Of a DNA stretch of 64,000 bases, positions 4,677 to 61,539 are shown piece after piece. Numbering within the stretch: position 1 is the first letter of the stretch; the number at the start of each line of letters is the position of its first letter. Under the pieces are notes generated by a model, which was given only the letters and a program-made list of their open reading frames with translations, had not been told where the DNA came from and did not search any database. Origin of the DNA: Paramoeba atlantica. Taxonomy: Eukaryota; Protista; Discosea. A program made the position numbers and the translations under genes. Where the stretch lies: positions 62,001 through 126,000 of the forward strand of contig CDRNVI010000144.1 of assembly GCA_977017575.1 (NCBI GenBank), read 5' to 3'.

Positions 4677-5480
4677 TGAATCTCCTCTCTCTTCTTGGAG
4701 TTGAATAAACTATTTTGAAGCTCTTCAGAGGAGGGCACCTCATCTTTCCCATTTCCACATACAGGAGAAAGACCAAGATTTGGAGAGGTTCAGCTCTCAT
4801 TGCAAGCCAATTTTGGGGATGTGAAGAGCTTGATGAGGTCGAAGATATAGTGGTTTGGGAAGTTGAAGGAGGAGAGGGCATCACCAAATATAAATGTATG
4901 AGAGAAAAGAAAGCACAAAAGCCGAAAGAGATTGCAGGGTAAAAGTTAAATGGGAAAAGAGAAAGTGAAAAGGTGAAAAAGGTGAAAGGGTTGAAGTGTG
5001 ATGCTTTCCAAGAAAGAGCCATCAAAACTTCCACTCTCAATCATTTTTTTTTTTGTTGGTGGTATCAACAGTGCAAAAGGTAAAATCAATTTCTAAAACC
5101 AATTTTACACATCCCATTTTTTCTTCATTTTTTCTTTTTTCTCACTTGGTTTTTTTAGGTGACAGTTTTTCAATATTTGAGTGAGAATTTGAATCCATAT
5201 TGTTATAGTAATATTGAAATTGATTCTGCAATTCATGGTGGAAAATACGATTCAAGTATTAAAGGTCATTTTCATCAGCTTGTGAGGGTGCATTTTTCTT
5301 TTTTTTTGTTATTTTTTGTTTTTGTTTTTGTTTTTGTTTTTGTTTTGGGATTTCGAAATTTGGGAATACAAAAACTTTTTCATCTTACCTGTGTTTCATT
5401 ATTTCTTGGTTCTTCTTTCCCTCTTTTTTCTTCAATTTTCGGGTCATTGATTGTGAAACTCATTTTCAAATAACCCTGAA

Positions 5481-5698: not shown

Positions 5699-6613
5699 AT
5701 GTTTTTTTTTTATTTTTTTTTTCTTGGGTTCATCTTTTTTTTTATTGTTGTTGATTCTTTTTTTCTTGTGATCAAATTTTTGGAAAATCTTTTGAATTGG
5801 TGTTGATAAACACAACATAAAATGGAAGATAAAGCAGAAACATTGATGTGTTTCATTTCTATTACTTTTTCTTTATTTAGTTTCTACATTTTCTTTATTT
5901 TCATTTCTTTCTCAATTTTCTTCTAATTTTCTTCTTAAATTTCTTGATTATTTTTTCAAATTAAATTTCTAAATTTTGAGAGTAACTTCCACAACTTGAG
6001 GCATCTTATGAAACAATTCACTTTACTGTTGATCAGGCTTGTTTTTTTTGTTGATTTTTTTTCCTTTTTATTCTTTTAAGTTCTTCTTTCTCATAATAAA
6101 AACAAGAGAATGAAAGAATCAGAACAGATGAAAGTTCACCCCCCTCCATCAATTTCTCATTTTGGAACAAAAAGAGGTTCTTCTTCCCCCCCCCTCCTCC
6201 CTTTTTTTCTCTCTTTCTTTCAACTTAAAAACTCTCAACCCACAAACAAAATAAAAAACAAAATAAAAAAAAATAAAACATTGCAACACAAACAAAGAAC
6301 CTAACAAAAACAAACCTCTTGGATGTATTTAGAACAAAAGAATAGGATCTTTGGAGAGGGTCTTTTCAAGTGAAGAGAAAGAGCGGCTTGTCAAGAGCAC
6401 AACATCTTTGTGAAGAAGGGGATGTCATTTCTTGTTTGTTTCTGTTTGTTCATTTGTTCAAACTCACATTCGGAGAGAGAAAGAGAGTTCTTTACAAACT
6501 GTAAAGGATTTCCTTATTTACATTTACAATTACAATTGAAATTGTTTCCCCCCCCCCCAAGCCCCCTCTCCCCAACAAAAATACCAGTTCTTTTTTGTCT
6601 TTTTTTCACAAAT

Positions 6614-13445: not shown

Positions 13446-13712
13446 GACGAGACGAAGAGGGGCAGAGAAGGAACAAGTGGAAAAAAAAAACCAAAAAAGG
13501 AAAAAGGGAGAGAATACAAATATAGAAAAACAACAAATAAAGATAGTCGGATATAATCAACCCTCAAGTAAAATTTATTGAAAAAATGAGAGGGGAAGAA
13601 GAGAGGGATGAGGGAGGGATGAGCGGAGTAAATATATCTGTTACCTCAAGTTAAAAATAAGTTAAAAAAGAAAAAATAATAAAAAATAGTTATTATTTTT
13701 TAAAATAAAAAA

Positions 13713-14276
13713 CCAAATCGCTCGAACTAAAAGAGCTTAATCTCAGAGGATCGTAACAACAAGGTTACTCAACCTCTTACAATTCCTCGTTCGTATTTAA
13801 GTCGTCTACAAAGGATTTGTATTTTCCTGAATTATTTTGGAATTCTTTTCCAGGGTTCGTAGGATAAAAAAGCGATGACTCGAGCTTCTAAACCTGGCAA
13901 CCCCACACCACTATTCTAAAATTGAATAGAGTTTTTAAGGTATTGGATACTAAAAGGTAAAACACCAACATTTAATTAACCCCGAAAGATTAATAAATAG
14001 AAAGTATTCTATGCTATGCATCTTCTAGTATCTATTGTTACTCATGTAAAATAACAGGAAAACGAAATAAATTTCAAAGTTGTAAAGGAGTGTCATCGTT
14101 TAATTAGCAAGGATTCTGGCTTAGAGGCGTTCAGCCGTAATCCGACAGATGGTAGCTTCGCAGCACTGTTTGATCAAACAACTGCATTTACCAATTATCT
14201 GAACGAACGGTTCCTCTCGTACTGAGTTCGATTACTATCACGAAAACAAAAAGAATGTAGTCAATTCATCAGTAGA

Positions 14277-14324
<48 letters not shown>

Positions 14325-14366
14325 ATTAGTGGGTGAACAATCCAACACTTGGCGAATTCTGCTTCG

Positions 14367-14404
<38 letters not shown>

Positions 14405-14417
14405 AACGTCGCTTCGA
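13713..14417 (-). rRNA. 28S rRNA, 3' segment (downstream of the insertion)
   Basis: Conserved LSU motifs in reverse complement, e.g. CTCACGACGGTCTAAACCCAGCTCACGTTCCC and GCCGACATCGAAGGATCAAAAAGCAACGTCGC. The 3' end is near GCTTAATCTCAGAGGATCGTAACAACAAGG. Confidence 0.95.
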
Positions 14418-14420
14418 TGC

Positions 14421-14849
14421 TTTTTTTTCTTCTTTTTTTTGAAACAAACTTTATTTAATTAGTAGTTTTTAATCTAAACCATTTGAATTATATTAAATTA
14501 TATTTGTTTTTAACCTTTTAATAAGAAATAAAGTTTTAAACTTCAATTTAGTTTAGTTATTCTTTATATTGAACTTTAGAACTTCTACAAGTTTAGGATA
14601 AAGGATGTATATCAAAAAAAAAAATAATTCAAAGTTCTTTTCAAGGAAATTTATTCTCAACTTTTTAGCAAATAGAGTTGAAATGTAATTTGTTTTGATT
14701 TTCACACTTTTTTAAAAGTTCTTCATTTCAATCAAATTACTTTATAATACTAAAAAATTTTTTTATAATATTAAAAAAACTAAAATTTGAACTTATACCC
14801 TTAAGGTTAAACATAATTAAATTTACAACTAAACTATAAGCATTAATTT
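14421..14849 (-). mobile_element. Hypermutated full-length copy of the tRNA-derived SINE
   Basis: The reverse complement of 14441-14849 aligns end to end with 35888-36294. An A-rich tail occupies 14421-14440. Differences are almost all C>T/G>A. Confidence 0.9.
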
Positions 14850-15009
14850 ATAAAAAAATAAAAGATTAAATTTTATAAATTATATTTTTTATTGATTTAA
14901 CAAAAATAGTTAAATTATTAGCAAAGTATAATTAAAAAAATACAAATATTGAAAAATAATAAATAAAAATAATAAAATATACTCAATCCTCAAGTAAAAT
15001 TTATTAATG

Positions 15010-15930
15010 AGTAACATTTCTTAAAAAATGAATACTTTTTAAAAGATTAATACTTCTCAAAAGATTAACACTTCTCAAAAGATTAATACTTTTCAAAGTT
15101 AATACTTCTCAAAAGGTTAACACTTCTTAAAAGGTTAATACTTCTCAAAAAGTTAACATTTCTCAAAAGGTTAACACTTTTCAAAAGGTTAACACTTCTC
15201 AAAAGGTTAACACTTTTCAAAAGGTTAACACTTTTCAAAAGGTTAACACTTTTGAAAAGGTTAACACTTCTCAAAAGGTTAACACTTCTCAAAAGGTTAA
15301 CACTTCTCAAAAGGTTAACACTTTTCAAAAGGTTAACACTTTTCAAAAAGTTAATACTTTTCAAAAGGTTAACACTTTTCAAAAGGTTAACACTTTTCAA
15401 AAGGTTAACACTTTTCAAAAGGTTAACATTTTTCAAAAAGTTAACACTTCTTAAAAGGTTAACACTTCTCAAAAGGTTAACACTTCTTAAAAGGTTAACA
15501 CTTTTCAAAAGATTAACACTTTTCAAAAAGTTAACACTTCTCAAAAAGTTAACACTTTTCAAAAGGTTAACACTTCTTAAAAGGTTAACACTTTTCAAAA
15601 GGTTAACACTTCTTAAAAAGTTAACACTTCTCAAAAGATTAACACTTTTCAAAAGATTAACACTTTTCAAAAAGTTAACACTTTTCAAAAGGTTAACACT
15701 TTTCAAAAGGTTAACACTTTTCAAAAGGTTAACACTTTTCAAAAGGTTAACACTTTTCAAAAAGTTAACACTTCTTAAAAGGTTAACACTTCTCAAAAAG
15801 TTAATACTTCTCAAAAGGTTAACACTTTTCAAAAGATTAACACTTCTTAAAAAGTTAATACTTTTTAAATGGTTAATATTTCTTAAAAAATTAATACTTT
15901 TTAAAAAATAAATATTTCTTAAAAAATTAA
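15010..15930. repeat. Tandem array of ~50 x 18-bp units, consensus AAAAGGTTAACACTTCTC
   Basis: The period of 18 is visible directly, with a central GTTAAC palindrome. Variants are C/T and G/A transitions, and the edges are more degenerate. Confidence 0.95.
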
Positions 15931-16141
15931 TACTTTTTAATCAATTAACATTTTTAATTTTTTTTTAAGATATTTTTTTTGAGAAAGAAAAAGAAATTTT
16001 TGTAAAAACCATATAAGGAAATGTATAAATAAAGAAATTTTATTTATACAAATAAAGAATTTTATTTCAAAAAATTGGGTCTATTTTCAAAATTTTTAAT
16101 TTTTGGTTTATTTTTTGGTTTCCACTTTTCTAAATTGAAAA

Positions 16142-18499
<2,358 letters not shown>

Positions 18500-18626
18500 A
18501 GTAGGAGTTTTAAGTGAATCTTTATTTTTGTTTTGTAATCCTTTGGTTGATTGAAATAAAGAATGTTTTTTTTTCATTTTGTTTAGTATATATTTTCTTT
18601 CTTTTTATTTTTATTTTTTTTTAAAT

Positions 18627-21965
<3,339 letters not shown>

Positions 21966-22646: not shown

Positions 22647-23413
22647 TAATGATCCATCCGCAGGTTCACCTACGGATACCTTGTTATGACTTTTGCTTCT
22701 TTTAGTTGGCAAGGTTTACTCAAATTCTCAAAAACAAACTTATTAACCGAAATCAATAAGTAACTGCTTCTAATCCTAAGATTTCACCGGACCAACCATC
22801 AGTAGCAGCGATGGGCGGTGTGTACAAAGGGCAGGGACGTAATCAGCACAAGCTGTTGACTTGTGCTTACTAGGAATTCCTCGTTCACGATAAATAATTG
22901 CAAGTATTGATCCCCAGCATGATACAATTTCAAAAGTTTACCCAAAAATGCTAACCTTGTAAAAGATCAGTGTGACTTTTCAGCCAAGGCCTTTTGTACT
23001 TGTTGATTGTATCAGTGTAGCACGTGTGCAGCCCAGAACATCTAAAGGGCATCACAGACCTGTTATTGCCTCAAACTTCCCTTGGTTAAACACCAAGTGT
23101 CCCTTTAAGAAGTTTAAAAGAATAAATCTTTTTTAATATCAATAAAAACGAGTTTTCTTAGCAAACAAATTAAGCGTTAACAAAATCCATTTAACTAAAA
23201 ACCCTCATAAATGTTATTATTAATACAACTAATTAGTAGGCTGAGGTCTCGTTCGTTATCGGAATTAACCAGACAAATCACTCCACCAACTAAGAATGGC
23301 CATGCACCACCACCCACAGAATCAAGAAAGAGCTCTCAATCTGTCAATCCTAACTGTGTCTGGACCTGGTAAGTTTTCCCGTGTTGAGTCAAATTAAGCC
23401 GCAGGCTCCACTT

Positions 23414-23455
<42 letters not shown>

Positions 23456-24755
23456 TGACCATACTCCCCCCAGAACCCAAAAACTTACTGATTTCTTGTA
23501 AAAAGGTACTGGAGGAGTCATCTTTATTCAAAATAAAACGTCTTCCAACCCCTGGTCGGCATCGTTTATGGTTAAGACTACGACGGTATCTGATTGTCTT
23601 CGATCCCCTAACTTTTGTTTTTGATTAATGAAAACATCTTTGACAAATGCTTTTGCAGAAGTTAGTCTTTCATAAATCCAAGAATTTCACCTCTGACAAT
23701 TAAATACTAATGCCCCCAACTATCCCTTTTAATCATTACATTAGTTCTAAAAAACCAATAAAATAGATCCAATGTCTTGTTCCATTATCCCATGCTAATA
23801 GTATTCATTGCAACATTTTTATTATTTTGCTTGCTTTGAACACTCTAATTTACTCAAAGTAAATGAATTAGAATTCTATTTATCAGTTTTATTAATAAGC
23901 AGAACACAAACTCCAAAGAGAATTTATATCCACAATCTTACTAATAAAGGTCCAATAAACACTGACTCTCCCGAAAGAAAATCAAATTATCACCCAATTA
24001 AGTGCAATAATGAATATCTAATAAAATATTTAGAGAATATAATTTAATAAAACACATATGAAAAACCATATGGATTAAACTATAAAACTCTTAAATCCAA
24101 CTACGAGCTTTTTAACTGCAACAACTTTAATATATGCTATTGGAGCTGGAATTACCGCGGCTGCTGGCACCAGACTTGTCCTCCAATTGTTACTTGTTAA
24201 GGGGTTTAGATTGTACTCATTCCAATTACCAAATCAAAATAATGAATTGGTATTGTTATTTTTTGTCACTACCTCCCCGTGTTGGGATTGGGTAATTTGC
24301 GCGCCTGCTGCCTTCCTTGGAAGTAGTAGCCGTTTCTCAGGCTCCTTCTCCGGAATCAAACCCTGATTCTCCGTTACCTGTTACCACCATGGTAGTCCTC
24401 TATACTACCATCGAAAGTTGATAGGGCAGAAATTTGAATGAACTATCATCAGCACAAAAGGCCATACGATTCGTAAAGTTATCATGATTCACCATAATGT
24501 TAACCAACCCCAAAGGATTGCATTGGTTTTTGTATCTAATAAATACATCCCTTCTCTCAAAGGAGTTAGGATTTTATGCATGTATTAGCTCTAGATTTAC
24601 CACGGTTATCCAAGTAGTAAAATAAAGGACCATCAAATAAATTATAACTGATTTAATGAGCCATTTGCAGTTTCACAGTACAAGTGTTTATACTTAGACA
24701 TGCATGGCTTAGTCTTTAAGACAAGCATATGACTACTGGCAGAATCAACCAGATA
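22647..24755 (-). rRNA. 18S rRNA (~2.1 kb), CpG-decayed copy
   Basis: Starts TATCTGGTTGATTCTGCC and ends GTAGGTGAACCTGCGGATGGATCATTA. Universal motifs carry CG>TG/CA changes (e.g. ACCTTGTTATGACTT, AAGAATGGCCATG, CCTTGTGACCATAC). Confidence 0.95.
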
Positions 24756-31496: not shown

Positions 31497-32324
<828 letters not shown>

Positions 32325-34313: not shown

Positions 34314-36872
34314 ATGAGTAACTTGACTGATGGTCCAATTGTTGGGATCGATTTGGGAATGACATATTCCTCTGCGTTGGTTATTGGGTGAATGACCGTG
34401 TTGAAATTATTGCAAACGATCAAGGAAATCGTTTACTGACACTGAACGATTGATTGGAGATGCTGCCAAGAACCAAGTTGCTATGAATCCATACAACACC
34501 ATTTTCGACGCGAAACGATTGGTCGACGATTTGATGACCCAGCTGCCCAATCTGACATGAAGCATTGGCCATTCAAGGTGGTGAACCAATCCAGTAAACC
34601 CATGATCCAAGTTGAGTACAAAGCGGAACAAAAGACTTTTTCTCCTGAGGAGATTTCTTCGATGGTTTTGATCAAGATGAAAGAGATTTCAGAAGCTTTC
34701 ATTGGAAAGGAAGTCAAAGAAGCGGTGATTACAGTGCCTGCTTATTTTAACGATTCTCAACGGCAAGCTACAAAAGATGCAGGTGTTATTGCTGGCTTAA
34801 TTGTTCGACGTATTATCAACGAACCCACTGCTGCTGCGATTGCTTATGGTTTGGACAAGAAAGGAGCGGAGAGAAATGTATTGATTTTTGATTTGGGAGG
34901 TGGTACTTTTGATGTGTCTCTTTTGACGATTGAAGATGGGATTTTCGAAGTGAAAGCAACTGCTGGTGATACTCACTTGGGAGGAGAAGATTTTGACAAT
35001 CAAATGGTGAACCACTTTACCAATGAGTTCAAGAGGAAGCAGAAGAAGGATATGACTTCCAATGCTCGCTCCATGAGACAATTGAGAACTGCTTGTGAAT
35101 GTGCAAAGCGAACTTTGTCTTCTCAAGCTCAAGCTTCCATTGAAGTAGACTCTCTCTTTGAAGGAATTGACTTCTACACTTCCATCACTCGTGCTCGATT
35201 TGAAGAATTGAACCAAGACTTATTCCGTGGAACTTTAGATCCAGTTGAGAAGGTGTTGCGTGACTCAAAGATGGACAAAGGACAAATTCACGACGTTGTG
35301 TTAGTTGGAGGATCCACTCATATTCCTAAGATCCAATCTCTTTTGCAAGAGTTCTTCAATGGAAAGGAGTTGTGCAAAAGCATCAATCCTGACGAAGCTG
35401 TTGCTTATGGAGCTGCTGTTCAAGCTGCGATTTTAGCTGGTGTGACTGAAGGAGGACTTTCTGATTTACTTTTGTTGGATGTTGCTCCACTTTCTCTTGG
35501 TATTGAGACTGCTGGAGGTTTGATGACAAACTTGATTAATCGAAACACCACCATTCCAACGAAGGCTTCCAACAGTTTTACCACTTATTCTGACAACCAA
35601 CCTGCTGTGACCATCCAAGTTTATGAGGGTGAGAGAAAGTTCACCAAGGACAACAACTTGCTTGGAAAATTTGATTTGACTGGAATTCCCCCTGCTCCTC
35701 GTGGTGTTCCTCAAATTGAGGTTACCTTTGATATTGATGCGAATGGTATTTTGAATGTCTCTGCAAAGGACAAGTCTACTGGAAAACAGAACCAAATTAC
35801 CATCACAAATGATAAGGGTCGACTGTTTCAAGCTGATATTGATTGAATGGTGAAGGATGCTGAACAGTTTAAGGATGAAGATGAGGAGGGTTGGTGCCCG
35901 TAGTTTAGTCGTAAATTCGACTATGTCCAACCCCGGGGGGGCGAGTTCAAATCCCAGTTTTTCGATATTATAGAAAATTTTTCTGGTGCTGTAGAGTGAT
36001 TTGATTGGAGTGAGGAGCTCTTGAAGAAGTGTGAAAATCGGAACAGGTTACATCTCAGCCCTGTCTGCTAAAAAGTTGAGGATAAATTCCCTTGGAAGGA
36101 GCTTTGGATTATTCTCCCTTCTGATGTGCATCCTCCAGCCTGAACTTGCAGAAGTTCTAAAGTTCAGCATAAAGACCGACTGAACTAAGCTGAAGTTTAA
36201 AACTTCACCTCTTGTTAGAGGTTAAAAACAAACATAATTTAATGTAATTCAAATGGCTTAGATTAAGAACTACTAATTGAATAAAGTCTGCCTCAAAAAA
36301 AAAAAAAAAATAATTCAAATGGCTTAGATTAAGAACTACTAATTGAATAAAGTCTGCCTCAAAAAAAAAAAAAAAAAAAGGATGAAGATGAGGAAGCTTG
36401 GAAGAAGGTTGAAGCGAAGAATGGACTTGAGAACTATGCTTACTCTTTGTGATCAACTCTTCGTGATGAGAAAATTTCTGCTGTTATCTCTGAGGAAGAC
36501 AAGCAGACTGTGAACAAGCATGTCGATGAGGCTATTTCGTGGTTGGAGACAAACCAACTTGCTGAGGTTGATGAGTTTGAACACAGGAGGAAGGAATTGG
36601 AAGAGAAGGTGATGCCAATCTTCTCCAAGATCTACCAAGGAGCTGGTGGTGAGGGTGGTGTGCCTGGTGGTATGCCCAGTGGTGTGCCTGGTGGTATGCC
36701 AGGAGGAGGTATGCCTGGTGGATTCCCTGGTGGTGCTGGGGGATTCCCTGGTGGAGCTGGTGGATTCCCTGGTGGTGGTGGTTCTGGTTCTGGAGGTTTC
36801 TCTGGTTCTGGTGGAAATGCAGGAGGAGGATCTGGTTCTTCTGCTGAACCCAAGATTGAGGAAGTTGATTAA
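34314..36872 (+). pseudogene. HSP70: Cytosolic HSP70 pseudogene interrupted by a SINE
   Basis: Contains the HSP70 signatures [39 protein letters not shown] repeats and terminal EEVD. Lesions are 5' indels, TGA at 35844-35846 and ~36449, several Arg/Thr CpG-codon substitutions, and a 490-bp insertion at 35888-36377. Confidence 0.95.
35888..36377 (+). mobile_element. tRNA-derived SINE with a 17-bp target-site duplication and doubled poly(A) end
   Basis: AAGGATGAAGATGAGGA at 35871-35887 and 36378-36394. The head has A-box-like TAGTTTAGTCG and B-box-like GAGTTCAAATCC. The 3' end is AATAAAGTCTGCCTC(A)16, then a 50-bp repeat of the 3' end and a second poly(A). Confidence 0.9.
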
Positions 36873-42131: not shown

Positions 42132-45100
42132 TTTTTTTTTTTTTTCAATGAAAGAGATTTTTATTCGAAATAGATGGTTGTAAGAGAAGGGAATGGTTCT
42201 CACCCAGTGAGAGGAGGAACTGCAGAAAAAGGGGGTAGTACATGTGGAAAGAAGAGGGGGGAATGGAAATGTCATTTGGATTGAGAGATGATGAGAAGCA
42301 CAGAGAGTGATGGGTCAAAAGGGGGTTGCTGGGTTTTAGATTTTCCTGTATGCTCATCATGTGGTTTGCCATTGCTTTCATTAGTGCAGCTGAAATCTTC
42401 TTCTTTGCTGTTCTTAAGAAGAGGGGGAGGGGGTTGGCATCCAGGACTCGGTCGTTTTGGAGGGCAATTGAGGCGAGGGATCGTAGGAGTGCACTAATGT
42501 CAGGGGATATTCCACCACCTGAGGATGAAGATGCTGGAAGGAAGATGACTTCACCTTGGAGAAACGGAAAGAGTTATTTGTTTAAGGGTCCGTTTCTCCT
42601 CAGGGGTGTCTCTGCCCCTTCCTGCATTAAAGTCTGTTTCAGTCAGACATCTGTTCACATATTCTCTGCATTTCATGATCCTGGCATGGTGTGCAGCAGG
42701 TGAGAGGGTGTCGAGTATGGGGGGTCAGAGTGGGTTTTGGTGGGTGTTTGGATCACACAGCGAAAGTGGGGGGTTTTGTGGGTTGACACAACTCGAACAT
42801 CAATACACAGATCCTGGTCGCCTTGCCACTCGCGGATTGTAAGATCAGGTTGCTTGTGTGACTTCCTGATTGGCTGGTAGGCTCCATCTCAGATTGTTGT
42901 TTTTCCCACCCAGCTGGCAATGTTCTTGAATTCATCACGGAGAGCATGGTGTCTTCTTGTGTGGTTCCTCTTCCACGACTGGTGCAATCTGAGAGGTGGA
43001 GGGAGGATGCAGCACAGAGTTCTTTTTCACAGAATCCACACTTGACAGTCCCAAGTTTGCAGAGAGCCCCAAGGTGTGGGTCAACTATGTCAAGCCTACA
43101 TCGGTAGGCTGAGCGAAAATCTTCAGCATTTAAGGCTCAATATGGCTTTGGCCCAGAGGTGTCCTTGTCAGGGTAGGCTGTCATCCACAAGTGGGTGGTG
43201 GGGCCAACCTCATTCTCACGGATTGCACGGCAGAGGTTTTTGTCTTGTGTTGGGTCCATGATCTTCTTTTTGACATCCTGAAGTTCACAGGAGGTGAACT
43301 TCTTCTGTGGTTTGTAGTTTTCTCCAGTGCCCATTGAGTCAGATGGTGGCTCTGTCAATTGAGTTAGGAGCTCATGGACAGAGGTACCACTTGGCAGTTT
43401 CCACTTGCTCAAGATGAAGCTTTCAAAATGGTCATATATGCTTGGTGGAGAGCCTGGTGCTGGGGTGAGTCACTCTTCCAGAAGTCTTCAAAGAGGTTGG
43501 TAAGTTCAGGTTTGAACTCAGAGCAGGATCAGTAGACTGAGATCCAGGAGCCAAGGAAGGCTGCTTGGTGGGTGTTCTGAGAGTAGCTCAAGCCACCACC
43601 ACCTTTTGACTTTGGAAGGCCTGCAGCTTCTACTTGAGAGAGATGGAGTTCTTTGTTTGGATGCAGGTGGGGGACTTGGAGGGGGTTGAGGAGGTAATTG
43701 ATGTTTGTTGTAGTGGTTTGCTTGATGAAGTCTTGGAAAGGGGTTAAAGAGAGAGGTGTTGTGTGACAGATGTATGTTAGTTTGGGTGTGATGGTTTTGA
43801 CAAAAAGCTCGAGACTTTCATGGGGGTTGGAGAACATTATTAAACAGTGGTCTTGTGATGCTTGTTGGTATTCTCGAGCAAGGGTGTGAAGCCACTTGGA
43901 AATTTGAGTGTTCAGCCCGATGGGTGACCCTAGAACTGTGATTACTTCCGCCTTCCCAATGCCAAGATTTTTGAGGTCATTGCTCCTGGGCGCTTCGGGA
44001 GAGAAACAGACCATTTTGCCCCTTTCTGTGCCAAGTTTGAGGTTGGCATTTGGGAGGACACTCTGGATCTGAGTGGTGATTTCTGCAATGGCAACTGGGC
44101 TCCCACAAACAAATATATCATCGACAAAGAGGAGAAGAAGAAGTGCATTTGGTGGAGCATCAACCTTCTGAAAGATTGGATTGAGGATTCCATGAAATCC
44201 CAGACAAAAGAAAATTGTCCCAAGGGGATCTCCTTGCTGGACACCCTCCTCCATGGTGAGGGTGTGGTTCTGGTCATGAGAGAGTGAGGGGTGTTGCTGA
44301 AGAATAGAAGGTGTAGAGGTATGGAAGTAATACAGGGGCCAGCTGGACTGTGCTCTCAAAGATGGTTTTTCTTGAGATGGAATTGAAGGCATTAACAATG
44401 TCCAGTTTCGTGGCATAATGTTGTGGGTGGAGGTGGAGATAGGCTGTGATATTGCTTTGTGGACCATTTTTGCACCACTTGGCAAGCATACACTATACTG
44501 ATGGGACAATTTCTCAGGAATTCCCTCGTGTTGGACTTCAAGAACAAGTGCAATCGCTGCCCACCTCTTGAGAACTTCAGCAACACCAATTGGACGGATC
44601 CCTTTGTCCACCTTTTGCCAGAGGAATGAAGAGAGAGGTTGCCATGATGTTGTGTATGGTTTCATTGAGTTTTTGGTTGGTGATTAAGACAGTCAATTCT
44701 TTGAGGGTTGAGTGGAGTTCTTGGTCTGTGCATAGGAGTGTGACAAACTCATAAGACATTCCTGAGAGCCCTGGTGTGCGGCCTTTTGGAAGTCTCCGAA
44801 GGGCCAGATCAAGTGAGTCAAAGGACTGAAACTCATCTTGTTCAAGGATTGCTGGTTTCCAGTCAGGAATTTCGGCTCGATCTGGTGGAGTCCACACCTG
44901 CTCAGATCTTGGGTAGAGGTTCTTCGCAGTTTCATGATTTTCTGGGACTGAGAGATCCCTGAATCCACTCTTGGATTGAAGCTTCCTTGCAGCTTTGGAG
45001 AGATGTCCTTTTCTGACCTCTTCAATAATCTGGTCTGCCTTGGTTTTCTTGGTGGACTTCTGCTTCCTCTTTTGCTTGAGTTTGCTGAGCTTGCCCTCAA

Positions 45101-46760
45101 GTTTTTTGTGGAGTCTCTTCCACTCAAAATTTCGCACCATGGTGCATCGAGATTTCACTTCTTTCATTCCTCAAGTACCCCTTCTAAGGCAGCCAAAGAT
45201 CCATTTTGGGAGGAGGATCAGGAGTTGGGGTATCTTATGAAAGAGGTGTCATACAGCACAAAAAGTTTTGATGACTGTATCACGAAGGCAGAGTGTGGTA
45301 CTGAGTCCATGTAGCAGAGGGGGATGTGTTTTGAGAAGGAGTCTCCTTCAAGAGAGAGGATGAAGTTCATTGTAGTCTCTTCTTTGCTTCCATGAGGAAG
45401 GGTTGTAGAGTGCCCATGATTGAAGAAGAGTTGTTGGATGTGTTGTGGGTCTGGGTCGAGGATGGGTGTGATTCTCCAGGTGTTGTCAGGGCATCCTCTG
45501 TGTACTGCTAAACTTGTGATCCTATCTGCCAAAGAGTTGTTCTTGCGGTTTCTCCAGTTAATATGGTTTTCAGGGCTTGGGAGAATGGATGAGAGAGTGG
45601 ACAATTTCCTTATTCTCACAAACGACACAGAGTGATGAGCTTCCAACACACCATCCATTTTGGGTTGGTAGCAACAGATCCATCCCCACAGATGAAAAAG
45701 AAGTTGTCTTTGACATTTGTGAGCGAGATTTCGGGAGGCTGTGGTGCAGGTTTCCAGTGTTGCCAGAACTGTAGGAGAAAGGCTATTCTCCCCGTGCTAC
45801 TTGTGATTTGAGAGAAGGGGGACGATATCTCATCTTGCTTTGTTTGTTGAGCATTTTTGAAATCTGAGGAGAGAATGGGAGTAAGGTCTTAGTTTTTCTG
45901 TTGGCCACCAAAGAAGTGGTTGATTTCAAGTCCAAGGAGGTCACAAGCTCTGCATGTTTGGAGGGAGCTTGTTCTTGTGTGATCCAAGTTTCTGAAGCGG
46001 GGGACAGTTAAGACTATATCTTCAAAGGAGCCATTTTCGAAGAGTTCAAGGATAAGGGAGAGGGAGGGAGGGTGGGAGGGAAGTGGGGAGGGAGGGTGGG
46101 AGGGAATTGGAGAGGGAGGGTGGGAGGGGGGATTGGAGGGAGAGCAGGGAGGGGAGGTTAGGGATGGGAGAGGTTGGGGGGGGGGGGGAGGAAGAGGGTG
46201 ACAGAGAGTTTGTGACTTCCTGTGGTGGGAAAAGGAGCAGAATGTAAGGAGGCACTTCTCACATTGGGAGACTATTACTTTTTGGTGTTGGCCTCTGCAT
46301 CTTCAGTATGAGCAATTGCCAAGGAATTTTGGAGGATGTGAAGTTGTCTTCTGGGCCTGAGGATTGTCCATTCGATTTAGTTCTTTTTCTCTTTCTTTTC
46401 TGTTTCATTCATTCTTTTCTTTTTCTGATTTTTCTCTTTCTTCCTCTTTTTTTCCATTCTTTTTCCTTCCTGTTTTTTTTCCTCCTCTATTTTCTTTTTC
46501 TTTTTGTTCTCTTCCTTTCTTTTCTCTCTTTCTTTGTTGTTTCTGCTCCTGCTCTCTTGCTTTTTTGGGGTTCTCTTTGTCTTTTTCCTTCCTTTTCTCT
46601 TTCTCTGACCTCTTCTTTTTTTCCTTCTTTTTCTTTCTCTTGCTCTCCTTCTTGGCTGCGACTCTTTTTCGAGTGAAGTTTTGGGAACCGAAAGTTTTCT
46701 GTGCTATCTGGTTTGAGGGTGCCCAGGATCAAGAGGCATGGCTGTGGCAATCTCAAAAAT
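42132..46760 (-). mobile_element. CRE-like non-LTR retrotransposon (RT plus restriction-like endonuclease), decayed
   Basis: RT motifs GIRPIG, LDIVNAFNSISR, GVQQGDPLG and FVDD (43529-45167). The C-terminus has CGFC..H..C, RRHH, QPDL and IDVRV (~42750-43060). AATAAA and poly(A) on the minus strand lie at 42132-42170. The 5' boundary is uncertain (46300-47270). Confidence 0.8.
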
Positions 46761-48929
46761 CTTTTGTTATGTCAGGGGTGGGGAGCAGAGCTTTTGAAGG
46801 TGGGGTTTGAGAGGAAGAGGGGAGAGTGGGTATTGATTCAGATGAAGTGGGAAGTGATTGGTGGTGTGGTTGGTTTGTGGTTTGTTGTTTGTTGTTTTTC
46901 AAGGGGGAAAAAGTCTTTTTTTTTTCTCTTTTTTTCTTTTCTTTTTCTTTTGAAATCTCTTTTTTTTTTCCTTTCCTCCCCTCCCTCCTTTTTTTTTTTT
47001 TGTCTTTTTGTCTTTTTCACTTTGTTTTTGTTTTTCTTTTCTTTCTCTTTCATTCTTCTTCTCTCTTTTGGGATTTTTGAATTCTTTGTTTTTCTTTTGT
47101 CTCTCCTTTCTCCCTTTCTCACCACCACTCTTTCTCTCTTTCTAGAGTGCAAACATGCCCAAAGTTGTGCAGGTAGTGCCATGACAAAGACTTTTTTCTT
47201 TTTTTGTTCTTTTGTTTTGGAGTTGAATTGTTCTGGCCCTTGAAATTGCTCAAAAAAATTATTGTACAACTCTAATTAAGGCAGGTATTTCTTTCAATCC
47301 CCAAAATTTTTTTGGATTTTAAATTCAAAGACCCTCTTCTTGAAACTGATCTTTTTTTTTTTTGAAAAAAGACTCATGAAACCCATAAAGAAGCAATTCT
47401 TGAAAGTAGTGCAAGCTGAGTGTGAATATTGTCAAGGACCAGACCACAAAGCAATGACTTATGCTGGACCATTCATTGTTGTTCCTTTCTTGTCTGAGGA
47501 GAAATGGTGAAGACAATTAAAAAAGGTTTTAGATTGAAAAATTATTAGAAAAGGACTCACCTCCTGGAACCAATGATTGAAACACTGAAAATTGTGAATT
47601 GTTGTTGAACATTTTGTTTTGAATGAAAATGGTTGTTTTTCTTTATTGGCCCCCAAATTCTTTGATAAAGTTGGGCAATCTGCTTTTGTGGAAGTGGTGG
47701 GGAATTTTCTGGTGGTTTATGAAGTGGTTATGATTGAAACAAGGAAAGCCAACCTACTTGTGGTTATTTTATTTGCTGCCCACCACACATCAAAGCATTT
47801 AATAACTTTGATCTTTTTGTTGATAAAAGTTCATCATTTGATTGATCTTCCTGAGGAAATTTCATTTCATGACCTCCTTGCTTGCAAAGAAGATTGAGGA
47901 GGATGAGGAGAATGATGAAAAAGGAAAAGAAGAAGAGGAGGAGCAGGTAAGAACTCTTGAACTTGGTGCTGGTGGATTGCAATTCTCTTTCTTCCCTTGA
48001 TATGGCCCAGAGAAATATTTCTCCTGCAATTTGAGAATTTTTCTGAATTTTTTTGAAAAAAGACCCTACTCTTCCATCACCAACCACAATCCAATAGATT
48101 TGTTGTGAAGGCAGCATCCAATCAAAATTAGAAGTACTACTATGAGTCCAAGAATGAAAATCCTCAACTCTCTCTCATGATGGAAGTTCATTACAAAGAC
48201 AAAATCTTCTTTCTGTTGGGATCCAGGGCAAAGGTAGGCATGTTAATTTAGGTATTTGAGAAACAGTTGATCATGATGCCCTGTCAATTGCAAAGGATAT
48301 TTTTTCTCTTTTAAATGGTCTCCAAAATCTGACAAAGAAATTCCCTAAAATCCAGTCCTTTTCAGATTCTTTGAGCCTCTCTTCCTTTGAATCTGTGATG
48401 GGGGATCATACTCCTTCAAACCCAGCAGCAGTTGGAGAATTGAGTCAAATGGCTGGAAAAATCCTTCAGATTCTTGGTTGCCATGCCCATAAATGTGATT
48501 TTGTTGAAGAAGCTTTTTGAAAGGCCCTAATCAAAAACCTGTCTTCTTGAGTTGAATAGGTTGTTGATGATGATAGTCTTGATTGTGGTGGTGGATCTGA
48601 CTTATTGATGAAAGCTCCAACAAGAGTGAAAAATATTCACTCTTCTTCATACTTTCTGTATCAACTTGGAAAACTTACACTGACTTCATTAAACAAGTAT
48701 GGGCATTCTGAAAAATTTCAGGTCTGAACAGTACAACATAATTTTATCCACCACCACCTCACACCTCTCCACTCAAATCAGTTTTTAGTTTATTCATACA
48801 ATAGTTTGACTTGTTATCAAGACTTACACTATTAGGAAATGTTTGTGGGGAGTTGTTTACCTTCTTCCACTTGAACATTTGAAATAGAGAATGAACAAGA
48901 AATTATTAAAAGTGATTTTTTTAATATTA

Positions 48930-49505
48930 ATTTTTTTGTAATCTCAATTTCTTAATTAAGTTTCCATATTGAATAAAATGTTTTAATTTATTTTTTAATT
49001 CTCTGATATGTTTTAAATTTATTTTTCATTTTAAAAATATTTTTTAAGTTGATTCAATCAAATTTCTTAATTGTTTTGAATTGATGTATTTGATTTATTT
49101 TTTATTTTCTTTTTTTCACATTAATTTTTTGTAATTTCAATTTCTTAATTATGTCTCCATATTGAATGTAATTTCTTAATTTATTTTCTGATTCTCTGAT
49201 ATTTTTAGAACTTATATTTCAGATCTGTGATATTTTTTAAGTTGGTTCAATAAAATTTCTTAATTGTTTTTGGTTGATGTATTTGATTTATTTTTTATTT
49301 CATTTTTTTCATATTATTTTTTTGTAATTTCAATTTCTTAATTATATCTCCATATTGAATGCAATTCCTTAATTTATTTTCTGATTCTGTGATATTTTTA
49401 GAACTTATTTTTCAGATCTATGATATTTTTTAAGTTGGTTCAATCAAATTTCTTAATTGTTTTGAATTGATGTATTTGATTTATTTTTTATTTTCTTTTT
49501 TATCA
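48930..49505. repeat. 193-bp AT-rich tandem repeat x3
   Basis: GTAAT(C/T)TCAATTTCTTAATT at 48938, 49131 and 49324, with colinear units. Confidence 0.85.
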
Positions 49506-50599
49506 AAAATTTTTTTCTCTTTTTTGAATATTTAAAATCTTATTTTTTTAAAAAATATAAAAATTAAATTGAGAAAAATATTTTTTTTTTAGCTAAATAA
49601 AGAAAATTAGTTTTGTCTCTGAAATTGATTTTAGTTTTTTGTTTATTTTTGTTGGTTTTTGTTTAATTGCTTTATTTCACCTAAATTCAAAAACAAGAAT
49701 CTATTATCTTCTTTCATAAAAAAAAAAAAAATCTTTTGCCCTTCTTGTTGAAGTAATTTCATTGTAAAATTTAAAACTTCTAGTTCATGAATACATTTTT
49801 TTTTCTAAAACCTTTGAATAAGAAAAGTTAACTCTTTGTTAAACTTTAATAAAGTAATATTATTGTTTTTATAAAAAATTAATTCTTAATAGTCCAAATG
49901 AAAAAGAATGAATAATAACTTTTACAAATGTAAGTTGTTTTTTTCAAATTAACTAACAACAAAACAGAAAACTTTCCAAAACCTGGGGTAACTTGTTTTT
50001 TAGAGTGAAATCAAAGATGTGAAAACACTTTACAAAGATTGAACCTTTTCAAATTGATAAAATTGTTAAATATATGTAAAAATGTAATGGAAACCAAGTT
50101 TCATTGATCCAAACCACCCTCAAAGATTGGATTAATACCACTTTCTTAAAAGCAATTTTTTTCACTTGAATTTATTCCTTTGTTTAGAGTGAAAAACAAC
50201 TTTTTCTTATTGATTTAGAGCCACTTGAGGCAGAGAGGTACAGTTTGTTTGAAGAAAAACTGAAACAAAATGTAAAAGAATTGCAAGAAAAGATTGATGC
50301 TGCTCACTTTCAATTGATCATGAATATTAATGAAACTGATTTTAATTACAAAAAAGATACTAAAAAACTCAAGGTTGTTTTAATACATAATTGCTCCTAT
50401 ATATATTATTCCTCTTGAAATGAATTCTATATCACTTTAATGCTCATAGTTAGTATTATTGAATGGAATCTTTCAATTTTTACAATTATCAAAACAATAT
50501 CCTTTGTTTCAAACTTAGAGGTAATGTAGAATCTCTCAGTGAATGAGTGGTGTTATGTAATATCATTTTCATCACCAAATATCAATAATAAGTTATTTT

Positions 50600-53160: not shown

Positions 53161-53164
53161 ACAT

Positions 53165-53480
53165 GTTGCTTTTAATAAAAAAATAAAGACCATCTTTGCT
53201 CCAAGTTAACAGATCTGTCAGGTCTGTCTGAATGAGTGTATAGTGGTGTGGTTCTACAAATTGACTTCTAGTTGAATGTTTATTCAGAAAGAAACCATAT
53301 TTTTTTGGAAATGAACATCATATAATTGGTTGAGGGGAGACTAGAGTGATATTTTTTCTTGAAATTGTCAAGGGAAAGTTCCATCCTCTTAAAATTCCTG
53401 AAATGGGCTTGTTCAAGTTTCAACCTCTATCAGGTTTTGGAGTGAAAACTGTTGGTTTAATGCTTTACATGAGAGTGGGC
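53165..53480 (+). mobile_element. Degenerate internal fragment of the piggyBac-like transposase
   Basis: Aligns with the reverse complement of ~57200-57480 (DESM, HPFGNE and IFFLEIV regions), with many G>A/C>T changes including the catalytic GAT>AAT. Confidence 0.85.
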
Positions 53481-56117
53481 TTAAGCTGCACTTGCAATCA
53501 TAGTGTTTTTAGGATTGAAGTGACTTCAAATATTCCTTTTGAGCCTTCAAAAAAAATCTAATGTTATATCCATATGTTCACTCTTGTGGTCTCTTTTCTG
53601 ATTTGTTTGTTTTTTGGTTGAATGAAGATGGTGAAGGTTGAAGAAATGGAACAAAAAAGAAAAAGAAAAAGGAAAAAAAGTGTGTGTTTATTATTCTTTT
53701 GATGATTGGATTGTTTGATTTGAAAGAAAAGGTTATGCATAGAAGTTGAAGGTGATGATGTTGTGAAAGGGAAAAAAAGAACCTGTTTTGTCAATTGATC
53801 CAAACAGAAACTCTTTCACCAGAGACTCCCATTCCTGGATGTATTCTCAGTGATCTTGACTTGACACTGATTGTTTGAAGAAACTTTGATTCAAGTTCTT
53901 CTTCTTCTTCTTCTTCATTGTTTGGGTCAATGCAACCTGATGTAAGTTTATGAAGAAAACACTGATCACAGTAATCTTCAATGTCTTTGGCTGAACATTG
54001 GAAAACTTTTGAAAGTGAAAAGAATTGGCCAGGGACACAAGACTTGGTCCTCCCTCATCTCAACTTATGGCAACATATAGCTTTTGAAATGTTCTCAAGT
54101 AATTGCATGAATCTGGTCCAGTGGTTTGCTCAATCTGATCAAACCCCTCCACCACCCAAAAGGAAAAGAGAAGAGGAAATCAACCTCCAAGCAGCAAAGA
54201 AGCAAATGCTGACACAACTCAATGAAATGATTGAGAATTGTAAGGACCTTGATGAACTCAAAAGAAAATTGGACAAACAAAAATGATCCAACTGTTGCTA
54301 TTTATCATGAGCAAGATGACAGTTTCACTCTCATCATTGGAGCTCTGGAAAGAGATTTGTTTTGAAACTTTGCTCCCCTGCTCAAACCAGACAAGAGTCA
54401 TCAGAAAACATGAGTCAACTTGCTCCCTCAACAAACAGTCATCATTTTGGGTCTGAGGTGTTGCATGGGTCAACTTGTTCTCTAGTGTGCACTCCAAGAG
54501 CCCACATCACTCAAGGTTTCAGCATTGGCCAAAACACTGAGTATGCAATTGATAGGTCAACTTTATATAAGACATTTGTTAATGCATTGATGGGTCAACT
54601 TTCAATTTCAGTCTCAAACACCAGGCCACTCAAGTGGTGATGCTCTCACTGAACCTTATCTGGAATGGAGGAGGATGTTGAGTGCACACACCCATGCCAA
54701 AACCAAATGTAGGGCACAAAAGAGTCACCCAAAAGATTAATGCTTTATCTGAGCAAGACTTAGTTTGAATAACTGATGAACAAACTCCTAAAGAGAGGGG
54801 TAAGGACAAGCAGAGATATTGGAGAGGAGACAAAGCAATAAACCTGAATTGAACAAATGGCTGATTCATTTTGTAAACAAATGAGAAATCTTCTCTTGAA
54901 TGGAATATTATCAGAATCAAAAATAAAAGCAAAGAATAATCAATTTTGAATTTCCAATCTTGTGTCCACAAGTTCATCTTGCATGATCTGACATCTTTAA
55001 AGTAAATTAAAAACCAGAGGAGAAGAAGGCAAAGAAGAAGGAAGGGGTAAGACAAGAGTGGATGAGGGGCAAAATGGGGCACACAGGAGATGGACAAAAA
55101 GCGCACATATCATCAGAAGGAATGCAATATCTCAAAAGATATCCTTGATCAAAGAATCTAAGCACTTTCTGCACATAAAAAGCACTCTTGTACCTCATCA
55201 TTGTAGTCACCATGATCAAATTCATGCAACATGGTGTGGAAGACCAGCTTGTGGAATTAATGAGGGGAATAGGGGGAAATGGAGAAAGAGAATTTAGGAC
55301 TTGAGAAAGAAATAAAAGAGAGAGAGAGACACATGAGAATGGAAAGGATGAGAAAGTGAAATTTGATTTAGGAGAAATCTTCAATCCTATCAACAAGAAC
55401 AGAAGAAAATGATTCTCTAACACCAACTTTAGGAAATCCAAGGATCTTGAGAGGTGGATGTTATCAAATGAGGAGGTTCAAGGAGATTTCAAAGAAAGTG
55501 ATGAAGAAATATGAACCCAAAAGGAGCAAACTAGTAATGCCAATCAGCTCAGTTGGCCAAAAGGATGAATATTTCCCCCCTTAATAAGGGTCACTGAGAT
55601 CCCAGGGGATGCAAGGGGGGGTTTGAATATTGAGACCTTTTGTCAAGCCACCTTTTGGGCAGTTAAGAGGAAGCAGCCAAGAACCTATTTGAATGTTGAA
55701 TTGACCCAATTGGTTCAGATTGCAATCAGAAAGAAAAGAAGATGGAAGATTGAGATCAAAATAAATAAGGGGGGGGGTTTTGGAGTTGGCTTGAGAAACT
55801 CTACTCCAAAAGGGGAAAAGACCAAAACCAAGGATAATTAAGAGGGATAAACAATGGAAAAGAAGCCAGAGAAAGTACTCAAGAAGTATGCAAAGGAACA
55901 GAACAAAGAGGAGACTTCACCAACAGCAGCATCTCCAGCCTTTTTGTACCAAAGAGAAAGATTGATCTGAGATATGTGAACCACACAGCACAAAAACTGT
56001 GAGACTCTGGGAGAAATGTTTCACCATCTTCCAAAAGAAAAGGAAAAACCAGAAAAAAAGAAAAAACCAGAAAAACCAGAAAAAAAACAAATAAAATTGT
56101 TAAACTCTCCAGAAAAT

Positions 56118-58622
56118 CAGGTTCCTTCCAGGCCAAAAGACTAATTAGGCCCCTATTTTTGACTCTTTTTTTGAAGCCACTGGTGGGTGGAGGGGAGATT
56201 TTTTTTGATAAACTTTTTAATAAAGATCTTTTAAACAAGAATATCAAGAAATATTTGTCCAAATATTGTTTTTTGAAAAAAAAAATTGAGTCACCAAAAA
56301 AAAAAAAACATTATTTTTCAAAAGGACTAATTAGTCCTCAGTCATGTGCCTGCTCATATGGTCAGCAAAGCAACCTGAACAAAAAATGAGTGTTTGATCA
56401 CAGGAGCAATAGGTTCGAACTTTCTTTGTACAATTTGTCCCATTGCATCCTACTCTTCTGGTACTCTTGTCTGGCTCCAGTCCAATTACCATTTCACCAA
56501 ACTCCAGCAAAGTTGGGCTTGATCATCAGATGATGTTCTACATGAGTTGGGAGTGGTATTCGCAGGTTATAGCCTTCATCCAAGAGATGATTCTGAGAGA
56601 GTAGACCTTGGGCAACCTCAAAACGAAATTCTGCAAAGGAGAGCTCTTTGGCTCAGGGGAAAAAGTGCTGAAATATGAGGAAGGCATTGACTTCCACAAC
56701 TACAAGAATGAAAGCAAACTGCCTGTGGACCCATTTTTTGGTCTTCCAGGAACTCTCCAAGGAGAGAGAACCTTGCCTCAGTTGGTTGTGATCATCCACA
56801 CAATGCCTGGTTTGATAGTAAAAGTCAAGAGGCTGAGTATATCACAGGGAGAGTCTTTGGCCTTCAAGCTTGTGATTTCATGGGCAACCAGTGGGAAAAG
56901 AAGTTCCCCAGGTATTAATCATTATAGAAGAGTGATGAACATCTTGGAAAGCCTCCACATAGAATTTATAACCTCTCAGAGATCCTTTCTTCACTTTCAC
57001 ACATAACCAGGTTCCTTCTCCTTGAGGTGTGCAACAATCTCTTCCCCTGGAATTCCTTTGGGCCAATATCGTTTTTTCTTCACAACTGAAGTACAATACA
57101 ATCCCTTCTCAAAGAAGTTGAATACAACCTTCCAACACACAAAAACCACTATCCAAAGCAATTACTCGACCAGTTCCCCAAATTCCCTCAGTCATTCTAA
57201 GCATTAAACCAACAGTTTTCGCTCCAGAACCAGATGGAGGTTGAAACTTGGGCAGGCCCATTTCAGGAGGATGGGACTTTCCTTCCACAATTTCAAGAAA
57301 GAATATCACTCTAGTCTCCCCACAACCAATTGTATAATATTCATTTCCAAAAGGATGAGGTTCCCTCTGAACAAACATCCAACCAGGAGCCCATTTACAG
57401 AACCACACCACCATAGACTCATCCAGACAGACCTGCCAACTTGGAACAAAGATGGTCTTCATCTTTTCGTTAAAAGCAGCAATCAGGGGTCGAATTTCCC
57501 ACATACGGTCTGTGTAAGAGGGTTTTGCAGAGAGAGGAGCAAGTTTAAGAGAGGAGACAATCATATCAAACCGATTTCTACTGATATATTTCCCAAGATA
57601 AGGCAGTGTACCATGCAAGGAAGATCCAGCTGAATCCTTTGAAATTCGAAAAAAATCCCTTCTTTTATGTCCTGGGTAGAAAGACATAATCTGGCACAAG
57701 GCAATAAAATCAAGCATTTCAGCTTCAGTGAAGTTCAAAGAATGGTTAAACTCATTTTTGTTGCTTTCAGCACATCAGTTTTTAGAAAGGTTAGAGGCAG
57801 AACTTGGAGAAAAATATCGAGGGGAGTGGGGACATAAACAGCATCAAAGCGAATTCTTGTACAGGCCTTGAAGTCTTGTGCTCCTATCACAGCACGAGCA
57901 TCAGTTGTTGAGGAAGACCACTCAGAAACACAAAGGAAAGATCATTTTCAACGAGTTCTGCTGCATTGTCTTCCCCTTCCTCCTCAATATCAGAGCAAGA
58001 TTCAGTATCTTCATCATCAGTATCAGATGAGCCCAAAACAGGCACAGAGGTTGTTGATGCCTGGGATGAACCAGAACTTGATCCTCCTGAGCCAGAAGAG
58101 GATGATGAAGATGAAGATGGATGAGTTGAAGTCCCACAACCCTCTGAGACATCCGCTTCTCCAACAAACTTCAAATTTTCAGGGAGAGCCAGAAGGTAAT
58201 CATTCTGGAAGACAGGAGAACAAAGCAAAACTACCATCTGAGATTTCCTGTCATAGTTCTGAAGTTCCACCCTTTTTACCCTGAGTGAAGAGAGAGATGC
58301 TCCTTGATATTGGTCACCAAAATGTTTCCTTAGAAGATGAGAAGGGCAAAGGTTCACAGCTTTGCAGAACCAAATAGTATCCTCCTTCAATTCTTCAATT
58401 CTTGGAGAAGTTGATCCAGAACTCATTTTTCTCACCACTGTAACTTTTTTCATTCAGACTTTCTGAGAAAGGCATTGTGATGAAAATCAAGAAAAAACCT
58501 CAAAGAAACACAAAAGAAAGTCAAAAAAAAAAAAAAGTTCAAAAATGTGCTTTATTTTGGCCAACAAACAGGAGCCTAATTAGGCCCAAAAAGACTAATT
58601 AGGCCCCCCTGGAAGGAACCCG
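56118..58622 (-). mobile_element. Full-length piggyBac-like DNA transposon with 15-bp TIRs
   Basis: TIRs C(A/G)GGTTCCTTCCAGG at 56118-56132 and 58608-58622. Subterminal CTAATTAG palindromes occur at both ends. The element encloses the transposase relic. Confidence 0.85.
56330..58453 (-). pseudogene. piggyBac (DDE_Tnp_1_7 / PGBD4-like) transposase with stops and frameshifts
   Basis: SRNRF, CLDESM, HPFGNEY, LDSGF, VDDHN and a C-terminal Cys-rich CNGTNC..RTYCSC..FCSGCFADH. Confidence 0.85.
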
Positions 58623-58943
58623 ATATAATATTGTTAACCAAAATAAACCTGATCAAATTGTGCAATATCTTGATGCAATAAATGAGGAAATATATAATAT
58701 ATTTGTTCTCATTCTCACTTCTAATCTAAGAGAAGGAAAGAAAAGATTGAAGAAGAGATAAAAAAAAATGAAAAAATTCACTATGTGAGAATTGAACCTG
58801 TTAGATGAATAGATGGTTCTTGCCCTTCTCCTTATTCTCCTAAGGTTTGAAAAAGAAGTTTTTCAATCCCCCTCCTTTGAAACAAAAATAGAAGACATTA
58901 TTTGAAAAATAACTTTCTTCAAAAGAACAATGAACCCCCAGAA

Positions 58944-58995
58944 TTTTCATACTCTCTGGGTGCTAATTTGAAAATTTGTACCCAGAGAGAGTATA
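58944..58995. repeat. ~55-bp hairpin element (copy 3)
   Basis: ATACTCTCTGGGT ... ACCCAGAGAGAGTAT. Confidence 0.75.

Positions 58996-61508: not shown

Positions 61509-61539
<31 letters not shown>

Follow-up and report, generated by a model that had tools for sequence, protein, structure and literature searches.

Can a repeat in the genome of a protist carry the mark of repeat-induced point mutation (RIP), the process by which fungi destroy duplicated DNA? The question was raised by a SINE copy at positions 14441-14849 of the window, the 64,000-nt stretch of Paramoeba atlantica DNA analyzed here. The original prediction held that this copy had undergone one-way, RIP-like hypermutation in a non-fungal genome, and that a repeat-directed cytosine methylation/deamination defence stood behind it. 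The affiliation of the contig was examined at the small subunit (SSU) rRNA gene. Its 5' end belongs to the ordinary eukaryote type, unlike the kinetoplastid type. The forward primer of the Neoparamoeba perurans 18S qPCR assay matched 24456-24479 with 2 mismatches and the 18S probe, adjoining the primer site, matched with 3 mismatches (both oligonucleotides within 24456-24500; chance expectation 0.00; sequences from PMC7464746). The published N. perurans reverse primer and another N. perurans primer had no match in the window within 3 mismatches. A protein atlas search with the Hsp70 of the window yielded no taxonomic information that could be used. The SSU matches assign the window to a Paramoeba/Neoparamoeba-like amoebozoan, neither a fungus nor a kinetoplastid, and this part of the prediction was thereby confirmed. 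The short AT-rich introns of the window agree with the intron-rich host genome of PMC5601477.

The decayed SINE copy, termed copy A, lies inside a ribosomal RNA gene. A complete rDNA unit was found by Rfam on the minus strand, with the SSU at 22647-24755, the 5.8S and the LSU from 21965 onward. The final 570 positions of the LSU model were located at 13715-14427 (Rfam), and an insertion of 4.2 kb separates the two LSU parts. The features of this region and the second SINE copy of the window, copy B, are as follows.

14421..18626, minus strand: AT-rich composite insertion in the 28S rRNA gene, GC 0.12-0.28
14421..14440, minus strand: degenerate poly(A) tail of copy A, at the same time forming the 3' terminus of the 4.2-kb insertion, by direct reading
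14441..14849, minus strand: SINE copy A, heavily decayed, GC 0.18, by alignment with copy B
14939..15005, plus strand: 67-nt copy of rDNA spacer, with its parent at 13513-13579
15023..15958, plus strand: array of 18-nt repeats
35888..36379, plus strand: SINE copy B, consisting of the body 35888-36294, a 66-nt 3' tandem duplication and poly(A)

Read on the rRNA-sense strand, the 4.2-kb insertion terminates in copy A followed by the degenerate poly(A). It is bordered by an imperfect target duplication of 9-10 nt (14412-14420 and 18627-18636), and the 28S is intact on both sides, with perfect eukaryotic consensus found 15 nt or less from copy A. The part of the 28S that it interrupts is the conserved 3' domain, the rDNA unit being otherwise intact, and on the opposite strand the insertion bears an AT-rich gene with introns, the cassette gene. 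The C-terminal exon of this gene resembles a DNA-binding domain; when relatives of the exon were sought, the window's own product was the sole hit, leaving no parent to compare. Copy B went into an Hsp70 gene as a fresh insertion and is framed by a target duplication of 15 nt (35873-35887 and 36380-36394). Its 3' end at 36230-36361 is a 66-nt tandem duplication with poly(A) after each unit, as if primed in two rounds. The Hsp70 gene that copy B splits (34557-36480) is further marked by an in-frame TGA (35844-35846) and by Phe in place of Ser at 35827. Both sites have C in further contigs of this organism, with 30% and 85% of depth, so that both are C>T changes in the window copy.

The body of copy B (35888-36294) was aligned globally with the reverse complement of copy A (14441-14849). 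The alignment contained 316 matches, 87 transitions, 4 transversions, and 2 gap columns. All 87 transitions were G:C>A:T in copy A and none ran in reverse, a count that bears out the predicted figure of about 87; the chance of all of them pointing in one direction is approximately 2^-86. On the SINE sense strand there were 40 C>T and 47 G>A changes, and overall 87/163 C/G sites (53%) were altered. Changes on both strands and in the contexts CC, CA, CT and CG had been predicted, and every context was indeed affected: CpG at 14/16 to 16/18 sites depending on the count, CpC at 23/40, CpA at 21/45 and CpT at 28/59 compared to copy B, with 72/146 of all non-CpG C/G sites now T/A. The 5' neighbour had a weak effect (T > C > G > A). 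C>T and G>A changes followed each other in random order along the element (40 runs versus 40.7 +/- 4 expected), and the composite RIP index was 0.44.

A pairwise comparison leaves open which state came first, and the alternative of an ancestral AT-rich consensus was addressed with Logan contigs of four runs from the same organism, placed on copy B at a likeness of at least 80%. The summed SINE depth was several hundred times the flank depth, and in all four runs copy B carried the depth-weighted majority letter at nearly every site. Copy B thus departs little from the depth-weighted consensus of its family, which makes the GC-rich state the ancestral one and the AT-rich state derived. SINE variants with a share of at least 3% in run X1 comprised 24 C>T, 25 G>A, 7 T>C, 1 A>G, and 3 transversions, with the greatest shares at CpG sites. 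Most Logan pieces were 90-99% like copy B and the family is very abundant.

Individual SINE copies were collected from eight contigs (L001-L008) of the ENA assembly ERZ24900291, which were reached via homologues of the window's piggyBac transposase and of a reverse transcriptase (RT), with copy B, corrected at one site (36213), serving as reference. A search in a purine/pyrimidine alphabet retrieved 22 copies in 172 kb. Their identity in this alphabet was 95-100% except for one doubtful copy, and for most of them 99-100%; the copies therefore differ almost exclusively by transitions. The 21 well-aligned copies together showed 522 G:C>A:T changes, 17 A:T>G:C changes and 19 transversions. The strand balance in the SINEs was 252 C>T to 304 G>A. 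The fraction of changed non-CpG C/G sites, here called load, ranged from 0 to 0.21 in 18 copies and reached 0.42, 0.49, and 0.58 in three heavy copies, namely L001:6144-6437, copy A and L004:6541-6187, with no copy in between (n=21). Copy B and L004:12601-12196 had no non-CpG change at all. The heavy copies were altered at largely independent sites, and a common decayed master can thus be dismissed. The copy L001:6144-6437 differed by 49 transitions without any transversion or indel and adjoins a copy with 12% load. Composite RIP indices of heavy copies were positive (0.44, 0.51). Apart from the known pairs, a purine/pyrimidine self-comparison of the window brought no hidden copies to light, and a SINE pattern tolerant of decay, scanned against metagenome contigs, had no match. 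One 78-nt piece, corresponding to SINE positions 140-217, recurs within another repeat family, which hints at a module common to both or at a chimeric element.

L001:11449-11525; L006:3709-3785, 5201-5277, 6212-6288 and 15318-15394; L007:13232-13308: 78-nt pieces matching the SINE

The same bias had been claimed for other repeats of the window, among them a DNA transposon with two representatives.

56111..58625, minus strand: piggyBac element, less decayed than the other three copies, with Pfam DDE_Tnp_1_7 in 57109-57738
53164..53465, plus strand: decayed fragment of the piggyBac transposase region

Compared to 57199-57481, the fragment 53164-53465 showed 28 changes toward A:T against 5 in reverse and 7 transversions, in line with the bias expected for 53165-53480. 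The spectrum was further polarized by the majority of four copies, with 56111-58625 as the DNA-transposon reference. Against this majority the fragment had 24 G:C>A:T changes, 7 reverse changes, and 6 transversions, and the three decayed copies gave 125:0:5, 53:1:4, and 30:1:0 in the same order. The L001 copy carried 65 C>T and 60 G>A changes. The window copy retains 17 CpGs that are nearly all gone in the other copies. Within the 28S insertion, the spacer copy at 14939-15005 differed from its parent by 7 G:C>A:T changes, none in reverse, and 3 transversions, so that the expectation for 14931-15005 held. It held likewise for the 18-mer array, where almost all variants were G>A or C>T, concentrated at the array ends, the end units having lost nearly all G/C. 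The S/T/P codon repeat at about 17800-18200 follows the claim in part: its plus strand is made of C and T only, and the variation thus consists of transitions alone with no assignable polarity. That the neighbouring unique exons stay open was partly true, as they contain an in-frame TGA at 17079-17081. The GC-rich block (46%) at 42-46 kb was recognized as a non-LTR retrotransposon with a broken RT frame (43529-45167, minus strand) and a CpG observed/expected ratio of about 0.2, and not as an ordinary gene.

These results bear on the idea that an APOBEC- or ADAT-like enzyme acted as a deaminase on SINE RNA or cDNA during retrotransposition, the copy going in with its mutations already in place. 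The sharp boundary between copy A and the intact 28S would agree with this, as would the fact that copy A closes, on the 3' side, a retrotransposed insertion that terminates in poly(A). Against it stand C>T and G>A changes equally frequent and interleaved on one strand, the graded load among copies, and the same bias in the piggyBac DNA transposon, the 18-mer array and the spacer fragment. Since the spectrum of the piggyBac element resembles that of the SINE, editing of RNA or cDNA is excluded for it and refuted as a general explanation, and we consider it highly improbable overall. Vertebrate APOBEC3 hypermutation likewise deaminates cytosines of mobile elements and shares the weak 5' T/C preference; it differs in its one-strand, clustered G>A changes and its restriction to retroelements, while here both strands were affected, changes were unclustered and DNA transposons were included. 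A bias found in a DNA transposon, a satellite and a spacer, equal on both strands, indicates a process acting on genomic duplex DNA.

How this process works in time was approached through context and load. In light SINE copies 41% of CpG sites were changed, compared to 8.6% for CpA, 7.9% for CpC, and 8.0% for CpT; CpG was thus changed about 5 times more often than other contexts. In heavy copies the values were 79% for CpG, 49% for CpA, 51% for CpC, and 51% for CpT. Intact CpG dinucleotides amounted to 23% in light copies and 0/17 in heavy ones; the reading that heavy copies retain too many CpG for one process was rejected on this count. The 5' neighbour of changed sites in heavy copies mattered in the order T (64%), C (57%), G (47%), A (36%). 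The load was even along the length of all elements checked, and single-strand runs were absent in 7 elements, where run counts equalled the random expectation. Together with the largely independent sites of the heavy copies, this points to many independent events. The direction of change was extreme: in the SINEs the non-CpG C>T rate exceeded the T>C rate more than 37-fold, in heavy copies more than 150-fold, and 0 of about 640 A/T sites were changed in the latter. The 17 light copies together carried 5 transversions and the 3 heavy ones 14. Related to transitions, this is 14/216 in heavy versus 5/306 in light copies (P=0.008), and the rise of transversions with transition load suggests that the heavy copies are older.

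Fungal RIP, as known from Neurospora crassa and other fungi, goes with duplicated DNA, a premeiotic sexual stage and a RID or DIM-2 cytosine methyltransferase. It resembles the observed pattern in several respects. It produces G:C>A:T transitions only, in repeated DNA and on both strands, and it leaves AT-rich relics with positive composite RIP indices next to spared single-copy genes. Besides the amoebozoan host, the differences concern the mode of action. Neurospora RIP converts CpA to TpA, while here no preference for CpA or CpT was seen and CpG was preferred in light and heavy copies alike; strand-polarized runs are missing and load behaves like age. Fungal RIP mutates every long similar duplicate, while here a very abundant young family of 407 nt escapes. 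Bursts independent of age, another feature of RIP, were not found, the load gap between 0.21 and 0.42 leaving some doubt. A RIP mechanism in the strict sense thus finds no support.

This gap is also an argument for an active RIP-like or deaminase defence, in which an enzyme would convert many C or 5mC per copy in bursts within one or a few cell cycles. Three of 21 copies stand apart at 42-58% non-CpG load with the range of 21-42% empty, and one of these, L001:6144-6437, has transitions only and lies next to a copy of 12% load. All contexts were changed with a weak 5' T/C preference in heavy copies, and the positive composite indices of these copies (0.44, 0.51) fit as well. Conversely, the heavy copies are richer in transversions per transition (P=0.008), as if older, CpA-type preference and single-strand runs are lacking, near-identical 407-nt repeats (95-99% identity) persist unmutated in a very abundant family, and the loads of the light copies spread continuously over 0 to 21%. 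The gap itself may be due to chance because just 21 copies were sampled. We regard such bursts as doubtful. Equally doubtful appears a variant with an enzyme-driven, context-independent C-to-T mutator of transposons and satellites, an independent analogue of RIP atop CpG methylation that would have yielded the 42-58% copies. The CpG-first, strand-symmetric and cumulative pattern is more readily accounted for by age and saturation than by a burst that struck young copies.

A cumulative process could be aimed at repeats or simply affect the whole genome. The following features were used for this distinction.

31629..32312, plus strand: polyubiquitin gene, 3 units of a 228-nt tandem, the control located 4 kb from copy B
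47200..49300, strand not assigned: patch diverging by 5-12% from L008, with surroundings at 0.2-1%

In the absence of targeting, a genome-wide AT-biased and transition-rich spectrum would have shaped all neutral DNA, with genes and rDNA kept by selection or homogenization. Neutral-looking DNA is indeed very AT-rich, with a GC of 6-15% in the introns of the cassette gene, 13-19% in a region of 193-nt tandem repeats and 9% in one L004 flank. SINE decay load was correlated with flank GC (Spearman -0.60, P=0.003), heavier load going with AT-richer flanks. The contig stretch L008:4-12876 corresponds to window 47448-63100 as a sister copy, either a haplotype or a segmental duplicate, and is without the 2.5-kb window stretch 49305-51854. 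The two differ by 85 transitions and 7 transversions, also in stretches without recognized repeat, with AT states more frequent in the window copy (59:26, P=0.0004). Decay is far stronger in repeats (SINE, DNA transposon, satellite) than in the ubiquitin control described below or in the rDNA, which supports targeting; the L008 comparison, with transitions prevailing also in stretches without recognized repeat, speaks against it. The patch 47200-49300 held 124 transitions and 15 transversions, and AT states occur there in the window as well as in L008; its 10 times higher divergence than the surroundings, almost all by transitions, also counts in favour of bursts of the RIP type.

Other observations argue against a genome-wide spectrum. 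CpG observed/expected was 0-0.2 in transposons, 0.55-1.2 in rDNA including the spacers, and 0.5-0.8 in Hsp70 and ubiquitin; CpG is thus retained in rDNA spacers and genes and almost gone from transposons. Singleton changes in polyubiquitin, a single, highly expressed and concertedly evolving gene, comprised 15 G:C>A:T, 17 A:T>G:C, and 7 transversions, 36/39 of them at third codon positions. These equal fluxes with 18% transversions differ from the SINE spectrum with P=8e-17. In unit 2 of the gene (31857-32084) an in-frame stop takes the place of Gln62 of units 1 and 3, likely a C>T change or else the sign of a pseudogene. A pair of 5S flanks, which is unpolarized and for which only the transition to transversion ratio was used, gave 13:3 and differs from the SINEs (P=0.02). 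Rate ratios of more than 37 to 150 would predict a neutral GC of less than 3%, while all profiled 200-nt stretches of the window and all measured 500-nt flanks of the fetched loci had at least 9%, none falling below this lowest value. Finally, the divergence of window and L008 is uneven, running from 0 to 12% along one alignment. Decay without any targeting seems unlikely to us, though it is conceivable, and the evidence was weighed as favouring targeting of silenced DNA, short of proof.

The spectrum, its direction, its strand symmetry, its occurrence in RNA- and DNA-mediated elements, and the contrast with gene and rDNA are direct results. They are best explained, in our view with slightly better than even probability, by transposon-targeted cytosine methylation at CpG and non-CpG sites followed by cumulative deamination. 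Transposon copies and satellite-like DNA would carry a cytosine methylation mark that is very efficient at CpG and substantial, too, at non-CpG cytosines of either strand. Once marked, C would turn into T by deamination at a rate 20- to 30-fold above that of each other type of substitution. Load would grow with the age of a copy, first at CpG and then at about half of the remaining C/G, down to an end state of 15-22% GC, and copy A would be an old copy that has arrived there. Both 5-methylcytosine as the intermediate and passive deamination as the chemistry are deduced from the mutational pattern. Of the proposed methylation/deamination defence, a process aimed at repeats is accordingly retained as the best reading of the data, while episodic repeat-induced hypermutation of the RIP type was unsupported.

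Decay of methylated transposons is known elsewhere, as in the CpGs of mammalian Alu elements and the CG, CHG, and CHH sites of plants. There, too, CpG is lost first and fastest to TpG/CpA, only silenced repeats are concerned, and decay is strand-symmetric and cumulative with age. The present case departs from mammals and plants in a non-CpG C decay more than 37 times the reverse and in the missing 3'-neighbour preference. With G:C>A:T making up approximately 94% of all substitutions, it is to our knowledge much more extreme than in either group.

For amoebae, a methylome study (PMC12344493) describes repeat-targeted, repressive 5mC focused on transposons and silent DNA, restricted to CpG in Acanthamoeba castellanii and in all four dinucleotide contexts in Naegleria gruberi. 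A focus on transposons and silent DNA would be shared by the present case, which is seen as a mutational footprint, and Naegleria indicates that context-independent methylation exists outside plants and animals. Comparable decay of transposons was not found described in the sections consulted (PMC12344493). Our search of the literature likewise returned no report on Paramoeba/Neoparamoeba or kinetoplastids that describes RIP-like decay or DNA methylation. We are aware of several points that weigh against methylation with cumulative deamination. The amoebozoan precedent, Acanthamoeba, is CpG-only (PMC12344493), unlike the all-context footprint seen here. By the standard of passive 5mC deamination, a non-CpG C>T bias of more than 37 times the reverse, rising above 150 times in heavy copies, is extreme. 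The load gap between 0.21 and 0.42 could reflect a second, episodic process instead of purely gradual decay. With respect to targeting, the L008 comparison showed its 85:7 also where repeats were unrecognized, and the gene control is a single gene, polyubiquitin.

For the annotation of this genome the results call for caution, since old repeats escape ordinary similarity searches, while the purine/pyrimidine alphabet retrieves decayed copies at 95-100% identity, bar one doubtful case. If dense CpG and non-CpG methylation of transposons is true, silencing in dactylopodids would be unlike the measured CpG-only system of Acanthamoeba. It would also be strong enough to erase transposons by mutation, an outcome so far linked with fungi. 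The footprint offers a testable methylome prediction for an amoeba group of relevance to aquaculture.
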